Assembly: GCA_977017575.1 (NCBI GenBank) | Contig: CDRNVI010000236.1 | Location: 1-5,104, forward strand | DNA from: Paramoeba atlantica | Taxonomy: Eukaryota; Protista; Discosea | DNA length: 5,104 nucleotides | Direction of reading: 5' to 3' | Shown here: piece after piece, positions 1 to 5,104 of the stretch | Numbering within the stretch: the first letter of the stretch is position 1 | How the letters are laid out: each line of letters starts with the position of its first letter | Notes under the pieces: generated by a model | The model's input: only the letters and a program-made list of their open reading frames with translations | What the model was told of the DNA's origin: nothing | Databases searched by the model: none | Program-made: the position numbers and the translations under genes

Positions 1-425
1 GTTGGTGTCTATAGTTTAGTGGTAAATTTAACTATGTCCAATCTCAAGAAGGTGAGTTCAAATTCCAATTTTTCAATATTATAGAAAATTTTTCTAGTAC
101 TGTAGAGTAATTTGATTGGAGTGAGGAGCTTTTGAAAAAGTGTGAAAATCAAAACAAGTTATATTTCAGCCCTGTTTGCTAAAAAGTTGAGGATAAATTC
201 CTTTGGAAAGAGCTTTGGATTATTTTTCCTTCTGATATGCATCCTCTAACCTGAACTTGCAGAAGTTCTAAAGTTTAACATAAAGACTGATTGAACTAAG
301 CTGAAGTTTAAAACTTCATCTCTTGTTAGAGGTTAAAAAAAACAAATATAATTTAATATAATTCAAATGACTTAAATTAAGAACTATTAATTAAATAAAA
401 TTTATTTCAAAAAAACAAAAAAAAA
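1..425 (+). mobile_element. tRNA-derived SINE-like element, copy A (heavily C>T/G>A mutated; 5' end may extend beyond the window)
   Basis: tRNA-like head with A box TAGTTTAGTGG (12-22) and B box AGTTCAAATTC (55-65), ~330-bp non-coding body, AATAAA at 394-399, A-rich tail at 409-425. A second copy lies inverted at 984-1405. Confidence 0.75.
12..65 (+). promoter_or_regulatory. Pol III type-2 internal promoter (A box and B box) in the tRNA-like head of copy A
   Basis: TAGTTTAGTGG matches TRGYNNARNGG. AGTTCAAATTC resembles GGTTCRANNCC. The 43-nt start-to-start spacing is tRNA-like. Confidence 0.6.
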
Positions 426-618
426 TTTCCTCAAATTATTCTATTTGATCCTGGGGTGCAGTCAATCTGAATTACCAAGTCAAAGTATTGTATGTTGTGG
501 GTTGGATTTAATTCTACATACAATTGGGCAGTTTTGGTTGTTATTTGACATTCCAAGCAACAGTTATAATATAAGTATATATTTGTTTAAAATAGAATGA
601 ATTTTAAATAACAATTGT

Positions 619-937
619 AGTATGATGGCTTAGTTGGTAAAACAGCTATTGCTTCAATTTGAGGTTGTAGGTTCAAATCCCAAAGAGGAAAATATTAAAA
701 ATATTATTTTCTCTTCTTACTCACTTGAATGTGAAAAACAGAACAGATTATTCTCTGCTTTGTTTGCTAAAAAGCAGAAAATAAATTTCCTAAAAAAGAG
801 TTTAAGTGAATTAAAGATCTTTAGACCATTTAAACCTAAAGAGGTGAAACTCTATCCTTGTTATCTTTAACCTTAAAAAATTAGTGACTTTGGGTTAAGC
901 TATTATTTAATAAAATCCAGTGTTAAAAAGAAAAAAA
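619..937 (+). mobile_element. Second, diverged tRNA-derived SINE-like element (element C)
   Basis: A box TGGCTTAGTTGG (626-637), B box GGTTCAAATCC (670-680), a core at 730-791 matching 49/63 columns to copy B, AATAAA at 909-914, tail AAAAAGAAAAAAA at 925-937. Confidence 0.65.
626..680 (+). promoter_or_regulatory. Pol III A box and B box in the tRNA-like head of element C
   Basis: TGGCTTAGTTGG and GGTTCAAATCC start 44 nt apart. The intervening AATTTGAGGTTGTA resembles the 3' anticodon-stem and variable-loop region of tRNAs after C>T/G>A decay. Confidence 0.65.
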
Positions 938-958
938 TACTCCACTCCTCTAAAACTT

Positions 959-983
959 GGTTACCCTCAATTGGAGGGAAACC
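959..983. repeat. Short imperfect hairpin between the tails of elements C and B
   Basis: GGTTACCCTC-AATTG-GAGGGAAACC: 10-bp stem with 1 mismatch and a 5-nt loop. Confidence 0.6.
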
Positions 984-1405
984 TTTTTTTTTTTCTTTTT
1001 GAGGCAGACTTTATTCAATTAGTAGTTCTTAATCTAAGCCATTTGAATTACATTAAATTATGTTTGTTTTTAACCTCTAACGAGAGGTGAAGCTTTAAAC
1101 TTCAGCTTAGTTCAGTCGGTCTTTATGCTGAACTTTAGAACTTCTGCAAGTTCAGGCTGGAGGATGCACATCAGAAGGGAGAATAATCCAAAGCTCCTTC
1201 CAAGGGAATTTATCCTCAACTTTTTAGCAGACAGGGCTGAGATGTAACCTGTTCCGATTTTCACACTTCTTCAAGAGCTCCTCACTCCAATCAAATCACT
1301 CTACAGCACCAGAAAAATTTTCTATAATATCGAAAAACTGGGATTTGAACTCGCCCCCCCGGGGTTGGACATAGTCGAATTTATGACTAAACTACGGGCG
1401 CCAAC
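984..1405 (-). mobile_element. tRNA-derived SINE-like element, copy B (GC- and CpG-retaining, apparently younger than A)
   Basis: The reverse complement aligns to 1-425 with one 3-nt indel in the A run at ~335-342 and small differences in the tail. B box AGTTCAAATCC at 1351-1341, AATAAA at 1015-1010, tail A5-G-A11 at 1000-984, 9 CpGs retained. Confidence 0.8.
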
Positions 1406-2270
1406 CCTAGTTCCACCTACAATCATCGCATGGTCCTTAAAGCCTGAAGGGATCGCATTAACAAAAATTCTTTCACTAGGAGCATTCAAGGGAATAAAGA
1501 CATGATCGATACATTGTCCTTGGAAATGGGTTGGTTCTGACCACCCCAGTTGATAAATTCCAAGATTCAGAGGATTCTGTGAGCTCTTTAAAAGGGGGTT
1601 TGTTAAGATCCCAGTTGAAGTCACCTCCCAGAACGTTCAGTCCATCTTTGGAGAAGAACTTTCTGATTTGGTCTTGCATAAAGGGAAGTTTCAGATCGCA
1701 ATGACAGTAGACATTCATCACAGCATATTCAATATTGAAAATCTTGGTTCTCAGTCCAAACAAACCACTCTCAGAGCTTTCAATTGGGTATGGTTCTATA
1801 TCATGAAGGCCTTCCATTCTTCTGACTCCAATGGCAAGGCCTTGCTTCTGTTCTGAGAAGGGGTCTTTGAACCACAGATATTTCCTCAAACAATTCTTGA
1901 GATGATTGAGATCTTTTTCAGATGCAACATGGGTTTCTTGAAGCAAAATAAACAGAGGATGGCAACTTGCAGCCATTCTATGGCAAAGGTTGAGTTTTTC
2001 ATCATTGTGAACACCATTAATGTTCCATGATAAAATCCTCATGTCTGGGAATTTGTTATACTGATACAGGTTTGGAAGCAGCGGCGCAGGGAAGGGAGGA
2101 AGGAAAGAAGATGAAGGGGGTTGGGACACCAAGACAGGTGCTTGAAGGGTTGGGGAGGCAAGGTTTGTTTTTTGACAAAGATCAATAATGGAAGAGTTAG
2201 AGGAAGCACAAGGGTCCTTCAGTGGTGGAAAGAAAGATTTTAAATTGTTGTTGTTTTTCTTTCCTTTCAT
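1406..2270 (-). pseudogene. Apurinic/apyrimidinic (APE/EEP-fold) endonuclease domain of LINE ORF2, frameshifted and truncated before RT
   Basis: MRILSWNING from 2042, LLQETH ~1940 and VLGGDFN ~1620 are in ORF 1476-2270. THFQGQCIDHVF (IDH 1510-1502) and KDHAMIVG (1438-1415) are in ORF 1322-1624, implying one frameshift at about 1545-1600. These match the conserved motifs of LINE APE endonucleases. Confidence 0.92.
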
Positions 2271-2278
2271 TCTTTCCT

Positions 2279-2878
2279 TTATGAGGGGGGGGAAGATGAG
2301 GAGGATGAAACATTGCTTGACTCAGGGAATCGAGCACTATCCATCATCAACACTGTCTCACCCCATTCTATTTGATGCAAATCTCCAAGAACCACAAAAC
2401 CGTTTGAGGCAGGGATCTCCGAAAAAGGATAAATTGTTTTTTCCTTCCTGGGGACACCAGTGGGGACACTCTTATCATGGTCATTTTCCTTTGTTTTTTC
2501 CTCTTCATCTTTCTCTTCTTCTATCTCCTCTTTTCCTTTTTCCTCTTCCCTACTTTTCTTTTTCTTCTTCTTCGCTGGCTTCTTGGTTACAAGTAATGGT
2601 TTGGTCCCAGTAGGAGTTGGTTCCTTCTCCTCAACTGTCTCTTCTGACACCACCCTCTTCCTCAGTCTGGATTTCAGCTTTAATTTCAGTTTCTCAACCA
2701 CCCTATCAATAATGTGGCCAAGGAAGTCTACATCAAAACTTGATTCCCATTTAAGCTGTCCTTTTTCTAACTCTCTCTTCAACTTCCCAAGGCTATCTTC
2801 AATCCTCTCCCACTCACACTGGAAATTTGCCCCATCTAATATTTTCCAAGCCCCTTCAGTGTTGTGGATAGTCATCAA
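2279..2878 (-). pseudogene. Charged, coiled-coil-like K/E-rich segment of the LINE: in-frame continuation of ORF1 or a separate ORF
   Basis: Begins in frame immediately after the TGA at 2881-2879 (AAA TGA TTG ATG). Contains heptad-like ERIEDSLGKLKRELEK and KKPAKKKKKKSREEEKGKEEIEEEKDEEEK. Ends just after a C8 run. Confidence 0.5.
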
Positions 2879-4349
2879 TCATTTGCTTCTAGAAATTGGA
2901 TCAGATGAGAATTGAGGTCTGCTCACATCTGGGGAAATCTCGTCCTCATCCTCAATTAAAATAATCCCCCTCTCAGTGTCAGTTTCAGCAACAATATCTT
3001 CAAGGAAATCCCTTTGAGGGATTGTTGGGGTTTCTGACACACTGCCCAAGTGAGATGATGTGGCTGGAGTTTGGGAGAGTGATTCCTTACAAGGTTTAGT
3101 AGTCTTGAGCAAAGATTTGGGTTGGTTACTTCTTGAAGGGGCTGATTTTTCCTTGGAGAAACCTTCTTGAAGAGCAGTTTCCCTCACATTTGTGCTTTGA
3201 TCAACCTCCATTGGGGTTGTAGATGAGGGACAAGGGTCAGCAGACTTCATTGGGGGTGGTGCCCTCTGATTGGGATTTGGTAATATGGGAAATTGGGACA
3301 GAGAGAGATTCGTACCTTGGTTCCCTTGATTAGTCAAGGACTCTGTAGAAATAATAAATCTTTTATGTGACTGTTCCCTCAATTTCGTGATTGTCACAGG
3401 AAAGGAATGGAATTTCCTCTGAGAGTCTGTCTCATTATTTAACTTTTTGATGATTCCTCCCTCTCCCTCCTTGTCCACAATCTTCTTTGCACATTTTAAA
3501 TGCCTTGAGTGTGAAATCTCGCACACTTGACAATTTACTTTCTCATGAAAGGGACTCATAGGGGTCCACAGAGAGATCTTACCTTGGAACTCATTGTTAA
3601 TAATAAAAGAACCTCTGTGCTTGGCAATAATACATATCAGAATGAGAGGAATTACATCATAGAAGATGACAATACAATCATCACTGATCTGAGCCACCTC
3701 TCTTAATCCATGGCAAGGAAGAGCAGATTCACCAATAAACAATCTTTGGATCCACTCTTCCCCTTTGATTAAAAAGGGGACATGGAGTTTAAAGCCCCAT
3801 AAATTCCAATCTTAGTTGTTCTTCCAGACAAAGGGCTTCTCAAAACCAGTTGTGAGGAAGGAACCATTTTCCAGAATGACTTTCTCCAAGGGTTCACATG
3901 TTTCTTCATCGAAGGTGGCCACATTGAGATGGCCTTTCATAACACACAAGAGGAAGTTCCCTCTCAGCTTAAGGACTTTGTTGAGTGTGGCCATTGCTCT
4001 CTGATAGTTTGGCATTCCTTCATAAAAACAAAAGGAACCCATTACAAAGATGGGGCGGATTATTGTGTTGTTCTTCACAGGGTTAACCTCAGTTCCAATA
4101 TGGGACAAGGTCTTCAGTATTTCTTTTTTGACTCGCAACCACCATCCTTCCTCAGGCGCTCTCTTCAAGGTCAATTTGATTGGAATTTCTTCAGAATTCC
4201 CACTTGGGTTTGCGTTTTTTTGTTCATTCTTTAAATACAAGAGGGAGTGAGACCCATTCTGGGAGCCCTTAGGGGAAGAGGATGTACTCTTTCCACTGGA
4301 TATAACAGATTTCTCTGAAGTGCTCAACTAGGCAGGGTTTCACCAACAT
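2879..4349 (-). pseudogene. LINE ORF1 (gag-like nucleic-acid-binding protein), disrupted
   Basis: Track ORFs 3812-4327 and 2879-3742 are in one frame, split by a single TAA at 3814-3812 (..VWKNN*DWNLWGFKLHVPF..). CQVCEISHSRHLKC lies at 3532-3491. The probable start is gccATG at 4349 in an adjacent frame with stops at 4271 and 4226 and an inferred shift at the A7 run (4221-4215). Confidence 0.65.
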
Positions 4350-4407
4350 GGCGGGTGAAGGAAAGAAAATCAGATTGGGCAAGAAAAGTTTCCTTGAACC
4401 AACCTAA
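4350..4407 (-). other. Putative 58-nt 5' UTR of the LINE
   Basis: Pyrimidine-rich stretch between the A22 tract and a Kozak-like CCGCCATG at 4354-4347. Confidence 0.45.
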
Positions 4408-4429
4408 TTTTTTTTTTTTTTTTTTTTTT
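4408..4429 (-). repeat. A22 poly(A) tail of the upstream LINE fragment
   Basis: 22 consecutive T on the + strand. The first two A on the - strand belong to the TAA stop (4430-4428) of the ORF2 remnant. Confidence 0.85.
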
Positions 4430-5102
4430 AAAAAAATTTGTTCTTCTTTAAGACTTTATGAAAGATATCAATAGCATACTCAGCAGATTGAGATCCTTCA
4501 GCACACACAGTTATCCATAGTGCAAGTAAGGCAGCACTTACTATTGAAGTGAAGAGGTTTGAGTAGTATTGAGCAGTAAGTCCACATACAAAAGAAAAGG
4601 ATTCCCAAGATGGAAGTTTCAACTTGATGCAGTTATATTCCATCTTCTCAAGATAACTTTTTGCATAAATACAGGTTTCAAAGAGGTGGGTTCAAGATTT
4701 TTTTTCTTTCTTACATAATCAATAGATAGGAGGTTCCAAAGTAAAGTGGGAAATCTTATCCATTGTAGGGAGACCACAAATCAAGAATTTGGTAAGATTT
4801 CATTGGAGTTGAGGTTTAAAAGTATGAACTAAGTTGTAAACAATGCATTTGATCTTTCCACCCTCTTGATAGATATCTTCAAGCACAATAGGTATTTGAC
4901 AAGAAAGAAAACAAGAGTTTGTTTTGGTTGGACCTTCCAGAATCACTTTTTTAGAGATTTTTAAAACAGCAAAGTAAGCATTAAGTCTCATAGCTCCAAT
5001 GGTCAAGAAATTCTTGTATTCATGACTTAGAGGTTTACAAGAGATAAGAAGAGCCCAATTGAAAAGAATGAAGTGGTGAACCTGACATAGTCAAAATGGT
5101 GG
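4428..5102 (-). pseudogene. C-terminus of LINE ORF2 with decayed CCHC zinc finger (zf-RVT-like)
   Basis: One unshifted frame joins track ORFs 4800-5006 and 4428-4643, with four internal TGA (5093, 4802, 4721, 4694). It reads KFLICGLPTMDKISHFTLEPPIY*LCKKEKKS*THLFETC, matching the LPT...CxxC..E...HLF..C pattern if TAT TGA derives from TGT CGA. Confidence 0.8.
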
Positions 5103-5104
5103 TT

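Follow-up and report, generated by a model that had tools for sequence, protein, structure and literature searches.

Near one end of a 5,104-bp stretch of DNA (hereafter the window), two copies of one sequence lie ~560 bp apart and point in opposite directions. One of them, copy A, has lost many of its cytosines on both strands, and the other, copy B, is almost intact. The first-pass annotation took A and B for the arms of an inverted repeat, and proposed that a one-sided, context-independent C>T hypermutation had struck A. The question raised by this locus is what could change one copy so heavily and spare its near neighbor. We find that A and B are two independent insertions of one SINE family, opposite in orientation by chance, and that A is the extreme of a continuum of cytosine loss. 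As judged from the pattern of the changes, the probable driver of the loss is methylation of cytosines in mobile elements, which then deaminate.

Anatomy of the window

The window is made up of the following features.

1..425, + strand: SINE copy A, heavily decayed; 50 private GC>AT changes relative to the family consensus; 0 CpG; 26.6% GC
426..612, no strand: spacer between A and C; 0 CpG; 29% GC
613..960, + strand: copy C, a member of a second, older SINE family; 0 CpG; 23-28 GC>AT, 0-2 AT>GC, 0 transversions
984..1405, - strand: SINE copy B, a young insertion; 4 substitutions off the family consensus; 9 CpGs
1406..4407, - strand: LINE fragment; reading frames resembling ORF1; endonuclease domain of the apurinic type (PF03372); 42% GC
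4408..5104, - strand: older repeat debris, with copies on other contigs too; 0 CpG; 33% GC

Copy A has a poly(A) tail at 409-425, and its 5′ end is the end of the 5.1-kb contig, so that its target-site duplication is unreadable. On the + strand, the poly(A) tail of B shows as a run of T at 984-1000. A further T-run, at 4408-4429 on the + strand, is the poly(A) tail of the segment at 4408-5104, which we read as retroposon debris. The family of copy C (family 2) has a core of ~50 bp in common with the family of A and B (family 1). The spacer at 426-612 had no match among the 61 loci compared.

All 30 CpGs of the window fall within 1081-4352, inside B and the LINE fragment, which indicates that the LINE fragment is young relative to its flanks. 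Copies A and C, the spacer between them and the right flank all have a ratio of observed to expected CpG (CpG o/e) of 0.0; together they make up ~1,680 bp at 27-33% GC. Copy A is an old element set among old mobile-element debris, which occupies 1-983 and returns at 4408-5104, and B and the adjoining LINE fragment arrived recently.

The LINE beside B (984-4407 with the SINE) breaks off before its endonuclease domain is complete, and the fragment at 1406-4407 contains no reverse transcriptase. A protein-atlas search with this endonuclease yielded no taxon. At another locus (L033) the SINE sits elsewhere in this same LINE, so the junction between B and the LINE looks like an insertion or a rearrangement rather than a fixed composite.

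A and B belong to a dispersed SINE family

Family 1 is a non-coding, dispersed sequence of ~420 bp with an A-rich tail. At least 150 candidate copies are present in the assembly (162 candidates at first look). Scored along their entire ~420 bp, 40 copies match B at 94-100% identity, while the best match to A anywhere in the assembly is 88% identical. At L033 a LINE is interrupted by a family-1 copy. The LINE matches on either side of this copy share 15 bp, an overlap that we read as a target-site duplication. Short length, many copies, a poly(A) tail and a target-site duplication identify family 1 as a SINE, a non-autonomous retroposon. ARAGORN finds no tRNA-derived head, either in the window or in the unmutated family consensus, and no Rfam tRNA match was found at E≤1. 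Motifs resembling an A box and a B box (9/11 each, matched by eye) occur at consensus positions ~12 and ~55.

The inverted-repeat reading is replaced by one of separate insertions of a dispersed SINE, and a link between the decay of A and the inverted arrangement is not supported. An inverted-repeat or hairpin function was considered and is rejected, as the arms are copies of a dispersed SINE of which many other copies are solitary.

The changes in A are private and arose after insertion

Local alignment of window positions 1-430 against the reverse complement of 976-1410 gave 371 identities over 432 columns, with 56 substitutions and two small indels. In the direction from B to A, the substitutions are 27 G>A, 26 C>T, 1 C>G, 1 A>G and 1 A>C. 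Repeat detection independently returned the same pair, at 85-88% complementarity. Thus 53 of 56 substitutions are C>T or G>A, against 52 of 54 counted by hand in the first-pass annotation. The conversion of about one third of G/C positions in A is likewise borne out (~31% found). All nine CpGs have been destroyed in A as had been noted, and both strands have been struck, with 24 or 25 C>T (tail excluded or included) against 25 G>A.

The direction of change was set by a family consensus, taken as the majority of 52 copies. Relative to this consensus A carries 25 C>T, 25 G>A and 2 transversions, and B carries 4 changes. Copy B is 99% identical to the consensus, as are more than 40 other copies, and the near-identical young copies form a star around a B-type consensus. 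Apart from segmental duplicates, any two hypermutated copies have only 3-19 mutated sites in common. This scarcity of common sites places the changes after insertion, in A itself. The first-pass annotation had B arriving later than A or escaping; the later arrival is borne out, with B 99% like the consensus. The opposite polarity, with A ancestral and B having gained GC, is rejected by the star-like consensus and by the privacy of A's changes, and an explanation by subfamilies fails as well.

Copy A is the extreme of a continuum

The number of GC>AT changes per copy runs from 0 to 50 over the 52 copies (for example 0, 5, 11, 17, 23, 27, 36 and 50), while all other changes number 0-6 per copy. 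Copy A is the most exposed copy sampled, at the end of a continuum in which the other copies carry 0-36. The idea of a one-off event at A does not hold, as copies grade from 0 to 50 changes, and the neighboring SINE C and both flanks are equally decayed. Decay is also seen beyond family 1, in the matching pattern of the family-2 copy C.

Pooled rates per site were calculated from 49 independent family-1 copies.

CpG transitions: 201/878 sites, 49 copies
Non-CpG C>T: 278/6954 sites (4.0%), 49 copies
Private A/T transitions: 9/11855 sites (0.08%), 49 copies
Transversions: 20/19687 sites (0.1%), 49 copies

The pooled copies thus hold 479 GC>AT changes against 9 A/T transitions and 20 transversions, and non-CpG C>T occurs at ~50 times the rate of A/T transitions. 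Larger duplicated segments show a similar excess of transitions over transversions (108:6, 28:4, 18:0, 8:0 and 4:0), and 64 paralogous stretches of at least 500 bp hold 2651 transitions and 402 transversions. Duplicates of 3.4 kb that are 99.8-99.9% identical differ by 4-8 transitions.

Changes expected to behave as a clock (A/T transitions plus transversions) rise only ~6-fold, while the cytosine load rises 17- to 35-fold. Copy A has 1 such clock change where ~4.6 would be expected from its load (Poisson p ~0.06), and the decay may yet include a burst component. The load of a copy correlates only weakly with the GC content of its flanks (Spearman -0.27, p = 0.056).

CpG sites decay fastest

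The raw contexts of the mutated cytosines in A reproduce those of the first-pass annotation (CpA 11, CpC 12, CpG 10, CpT 17), but the conclusion drawn from them, that mutation was independent of context, does not stand once counts are taken per site. In A, 10 of 18 CpG sites have changed, compared with 39 of 142 non-CpG sites. At a uniform 27.5% per site, the probability of losing nine of nine CpGs would be ~0.001. The raw counts in A are near equal because CpG sites are few and have been exhausted.

Less decayed copies make this plain. In the lightest load class 8.1% of CpG sites have changed, compared with 0.77% of other cytosines; in the next class the values are 24.7% and 2.7%. CpG is thus ~10 times more mutable than other cytosines in lightly mutated copies. 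When CpG and non-CpG loss are modeled as two exponential decays, k(CpG)/k(non-CpG) lies at 7-26 in every load class, a steadiness that a single ongoing process predicts.

In hypermutated copies the per-site values are 0.11 for CpA, 0.11 for CpT, 0.16 for CpC and 0.52 for CpG, so the CpA preference of Neurospora-type RIP is not found there. The TpCpG preference of Pucciniomycotina is not found either, as TCG (0.44) is the lowest of the four NCG contexts (ACG 0.50, CCG 0.67, GCG 0.50). A plant-like preference for CHG was looked for and not seen, with CHG at 4.4% and CHH at 3.8%. In heavily mutated copies, a cytosine that follows T or C is ~1.6 times likelier to be changed than one that follows A or G (TpC 0.21 and CpC 0.19, against 0.12 and 0.13 for A- and G-preceded cytosines).

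Decay tracks mobile-element DNA

CpG o/e is 0.0-0.6 in the flanks of other SINE copies and 0.0-0.2 in transposable element (TE) DNA. In the rDNA it reaches 0.8-1.25, with 0.81 in the SSU rRNA gene and 1.2 in the spacer downstream of SSU (25% GC), and in the ubiquitin gene it is 0.86. Two rDNA units differ by transitions and transversions in ratios of 20:6 (SSU) and 20:10 (downstream spacer). In this small sample, CpG depletion is confined to TE DNA, and the rDNA and ubiquitin genes are spared. The rDNA is both repeated and dispersed, yet it keeps its CpGs and a normal mutation spectrum. The process therefore does not act on the whole genome, and repetition as such is not its trigger; it follows mobile-element DNA.

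The host SSU rRNA genes (2.1 kb) do not form one array. Eleven full-length genes were scored on six contigs, and they are 97.5% alike. Two units on the same contig, L057 and L058 (C149:428143-433250 and 203594-208695), differ at 26 of 2,102 SSU positions.

Two protein-coding loci gave further observations. The polyubiquitin gene at L062:28-723 has three repeats, the second of which contains a CAA>TAA stop; the C>T change behind it, at locus position 439, is of the type seen in the repeat decay. L062 is contig ctg4009l of ENA ERZ24900291, the same DNA as assembly contig C144. An HSP70 frame of 466-485 amino acids stops at a SINE insertion in three paralogous loci (L006:57-1454, L008:57-1511 and L011:1910-3364). 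It is 99% identical to an ENA protein and ~80% identical to animal HSP70, with no named close match, and is too conserved to place the host taxonomically. CpG o/e is ~0.27-0.29 across 1-kb flanks containing the frame; across the called gene in L062 it is 0.52.

Both strands of resident DNA are struck

The 24 C>T and 25 G>A changes in A fall into 25 strand runs, with 24.8 expected (runs test). Strand runs are at chance in 11 of 12 heavily mutated copies, A included, and C>T and G>A are balanced. This balance and random interleaving rule out one-strand editing of RNA or cDNA at retrotransposition, and argue against processive deamination of single strands. Of all the copies examined, one is strongly strand-biased: a family-2 copy (L050:1515-1839) has 13 C>T and a single G>A (binomial p = 0.002).

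The SINE in the duplicates L055 and L056 has 18 changes common to both copies and 8 private to each. Duplicates thus share their older changes and gain private ones, which indicates that the process works on resident DNA and that both copies are struck. The apparent one-sidedness in the window is a consequence of B's youth.

The assembly mixes an amoeba with a kinetoplastid

The assembly comprises 45.7 Mb in 248 contigs, and the matches divide between two sets of them. All kinetoplastid-type matches lie on contigs C3-C90 (loci L059-L061), and all SINE and SSU matches lie on contigs C137 and above, including C236, which holds the window (loci L002-L058). The kinetoplastid contigs that were sampled have HSP90 genes in intron-less tandem arrays with a 2,587-bp period, ~50% GC and a CpG o/e of 1.0. 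These contigs also carry JBP1/2-like genes, and everything on them occurs in haplotype pairs. An entry of the Paramoeba atlantica transcriptome (EukProt) matches the kinetoplastid HSP90 at 99% identity, and Perkinsela sp. CCAP 1560/4 matches it at 82%.

The other contigs are AT-rich and repeat-rich, and carry both SINE families and the 2.1-kb SSU rRNA gene. A Neoparamoeba perurans 18S probe matched the SSU on the SINE-bearing contig C149 at 31 of 31 positions and at the expected place, while perurans-specific primers had no match to that SSU. We infer that the window comes from the amoeba host, a Paramoeba other than P. perurans, and that the remainder comes from a Perkinsela-like kinetoplastid endosymbiont. 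The host contigs in the assembly are a gene-poor part of the host genome. Amoebic gill disease of farmed salmon is caused by relatives of this amoeba. The mixture of host and symbiont bears on every other finding drawn from this assembly.

Methylation followed by deamination as the probable driver

In the mechanism we propose, mobile-element DNA would steadily lose cytosines by deamination, site by site and on both strands, with CpG decaying ~10 times faster than other cytosines and those ~50 times faster than A/T changes accrue. Methylation would fall chiefly on CpG and to a lesser degree on cytosines in other contexts. Deamination of 5-methylcytosine would yield thymine, which is expected to escape uracil repair. 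Methylation directed at TEs, with deamination of 5mC, predicts decay that is led by CpG, strikes single sites on both strands, is restricted to TEs and is graded by apparent age, which is the pattern found. The first-pass annotation had proposed either a RIP-like process or all-context methylation and deamination acting on A. The methylation and deamination half of that proposal is the best fit, and we consider it probable; RIP triggered by homology is not favored.

The non-CpG C>T excess is, to our knowledge, far above anything in CpG-methylated animal genomes. An excess this large needs real non-CpG methylation or another agent. The profiles for cytosine-5 methyltransferases (PF00145, TIGR00675) match nothing in the assembly, and neither do those for the SRA domain (PF02182) and the NAD1-type deaminase (PF18778), within host contigs that represent the gene-poor fraction. 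Matches to Tet/JBP (PF12851) and to CDA-fold deaminases (PF00383) occur on kinetoplastid contigs only. The search for RID/Masc1-type or AID/APOBEC-like genes that had been suggested for the host likewise found none in this assembly, whose host contigs hold little gene space. These host contigs contain neither HSP90 nor CDA-fold deaminases, so the enzyme negatives say little about the host.

Alternative explanations

It is very improbable that A is unmutated, whether as a descendant of an older, AT-rich master gene, with B-type copies having gained GC, or as a sequencing artefact of a short contig. Copy A does lie on a 5.1-kb contig whose end cuts off its 5′ end. However, no copy shares its changes as a block, its best match reaches 88%, and the young copies radiate from a B-type consensus. 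An artefact is further opposed by other hypermutated copies within contigs of 37-600 kb, and by one host locus that is base-for-base identical in the independent ENA record ERZ24900291 (contig ctg4009l). We find it hardly credible that an APOBEC- or ADAR-type enzyme edited the SINE RNA or cDNA of A before integration. A bears the poly(A) tail of a retroposed copy, and hypermutated retroelement copies made by such editing are known in vertebrates, but such editing would be expected to change one strand, and the 24 C>T and 25 G>A of A are interleaved at random. Duplicates have gained private transitions after duplication (8 + 8 in L055/L056, and 108 over 2.6 kb in another pair), and flanks that are not SINE have decayed too. 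A mutation bias across the whole genome, for instance through weak repair of deaminated cytosine, would make A merely old neutral DNA. The unique-looking spacer at 426-612 is likewise CpG-free and AT-rich, the paralogous HSP70 region has 24 GC>AT against 8 AT>GC, and a polyubiquitin repeat carries a CAA>TAA stop, all as such a bias would have it. We nonetheless regard it as improbable, because the 25%-GC spacer after SSU keeps a CpG o/e of 1.2 and a transition to transversion ratio of 2, ubiquitin keeps a CpG o/e of 0.86, and the measured rate ratio predicts ~1-2% GC in neutral DNA where the old flanks have 21-33%.

An active RIP-like defense deserves more attention, though we think it unlikely. 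Here a deaminase or a methyltransferase-like enzyme would act episodically on repeated or heterochromatic DNA, and copies would differ by the episodes they had met. The near-pure C:G>T:A spectrum, with up to 31% of G/C converted and other changes at ~0.1-0.5%, is what such an enzyme would leave, and the size of the non-CpG excess and the restriction of decay to mobile-element DNA fit it as well. So do the shortage of clock changes in A for its load (p ~0.06), the 13:1 strand bias of one family-2 copy and the mild preference for TpC and CpC. Outside fungi, targeted hypermutation is already known from Bigelowiella, there as T/A>C/G at TpA. Against this stand the lack of preference for CpA or TpCpG, the more than 40 copies (97-100% identical to B) and the 3.4-kb duplicates (99.8-99.9%) that are untouched, and the sparing of the rDNA units (11 full-length, 97.5% alike). 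The loads form a smooth continuum with a constant ratio of CpG to non-CpG rates, and the changes show no clustering coordinated by strand. A particular form of enzyme action, a cytosine hypermutation of mobile-element chromatin that is led by CpG, affects all contexts, is indifferent to strand, is graded and does not depend on fungal RID, is likewise a minority candidate in our judgment.

Implications

Our literature search found no paper on methylation, repeats or RIP-like decay in Paramoeba. If methylation drives the decay, the pattern is indirect evidence that a Paramoeba-type amoeba marks its mobile elements, at CpG and more weakly elsewhere. It would extend the view of repressive 5mC as an old eukaryotic means of transposon control (PMC12344493), and would account for the AT-rich, CpG-free old repeats of this genome. 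If the process is instead driven by an enzyme, it would be a non-fungal counterpart of RIP, and the first such C>T genome defense described outside fungi. Kimura-type repeat ages in this genome are badly inflated unless cytosine sites are excluded. We see here a known type of process in a host new to it, with a minority chance of something more novel.

Comparison with known systems

RIP of the Neurospora type strongly prefers CpA and usually mutates both copies of a repeat. The decay seen here resembles RIP of Neurospora crassa and other ascomycetes in consisting of C:G>T:A changes only, in falling on repeated mobile DNA, in converting up to a third of G/C and in creating stop codons. It differs in having no CpA preference, in loads that are graded and led by CpG, and in leaving many near-identical copies, long duplicates and rDNA repeats unmutated. 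The host, moreover, is not a fungus, and we know of no sexual cycle in it. AID/APOBEC editing of retroelement cDNA produces changes that are strand-specific, clustered and fixed at integration, none of which is seen in A.

A RIP-like C>T hypermutation at TpCpG has been described in Pucciniomycotina (Horns et al. 2012, PMC3318451). It is similar in striking TE copies and in centering on sites that contain CpG, but here all four NCG contexts are hit alike (0.44-0.67) and non-CpG contexts have changed too. In asexually propagated Neurospora, mutation is raised ~10-fold in H3K9me3 heterochromatin, with a broader spectrum (PMC10234303). That effect resembles ours as a gradual rise, specific to a chromatin domain, in repeat-rich DNA without meiosis; the excess in our data is specific to cytosine and much purer. 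In Bigelowiella natans, integrated viral DNA is hypermutable, with T/A>C/G changes at TpA (bioRxiv 10.64898/2026.01.13.699255). In both cases a protist shows localized hypermutation of DNA that is foreign or parasitic, and a defense based on deamination has been proposed there. Its direction and context are the opposite of those in our SINEs, and its targets are viral inserts.

The closest likeness is to the decay of methylated TEs. Vertebrate SINEs and LINEs lose CpG by deamination of 5mC. Among amoebae, methylation in Acanthamoeba is confined to CpG and marks young copies of LINE and LTR elements, and in Naegleria it marks repeats in all contexts, in both cases with enrichment on young repeats (PMC12344493). 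As in these systems, CpG decays fastest in our data, depletion is confined to TEs, and single sites are struck on both strands. Our host is an amoeba as well, and its young copies are intact while its old ones have decayed. It departs from them in that non-CpG cytosines also change at ~50 times the A/T rate, and in a transition to transversion ratio of ~13:1 to 25:1.
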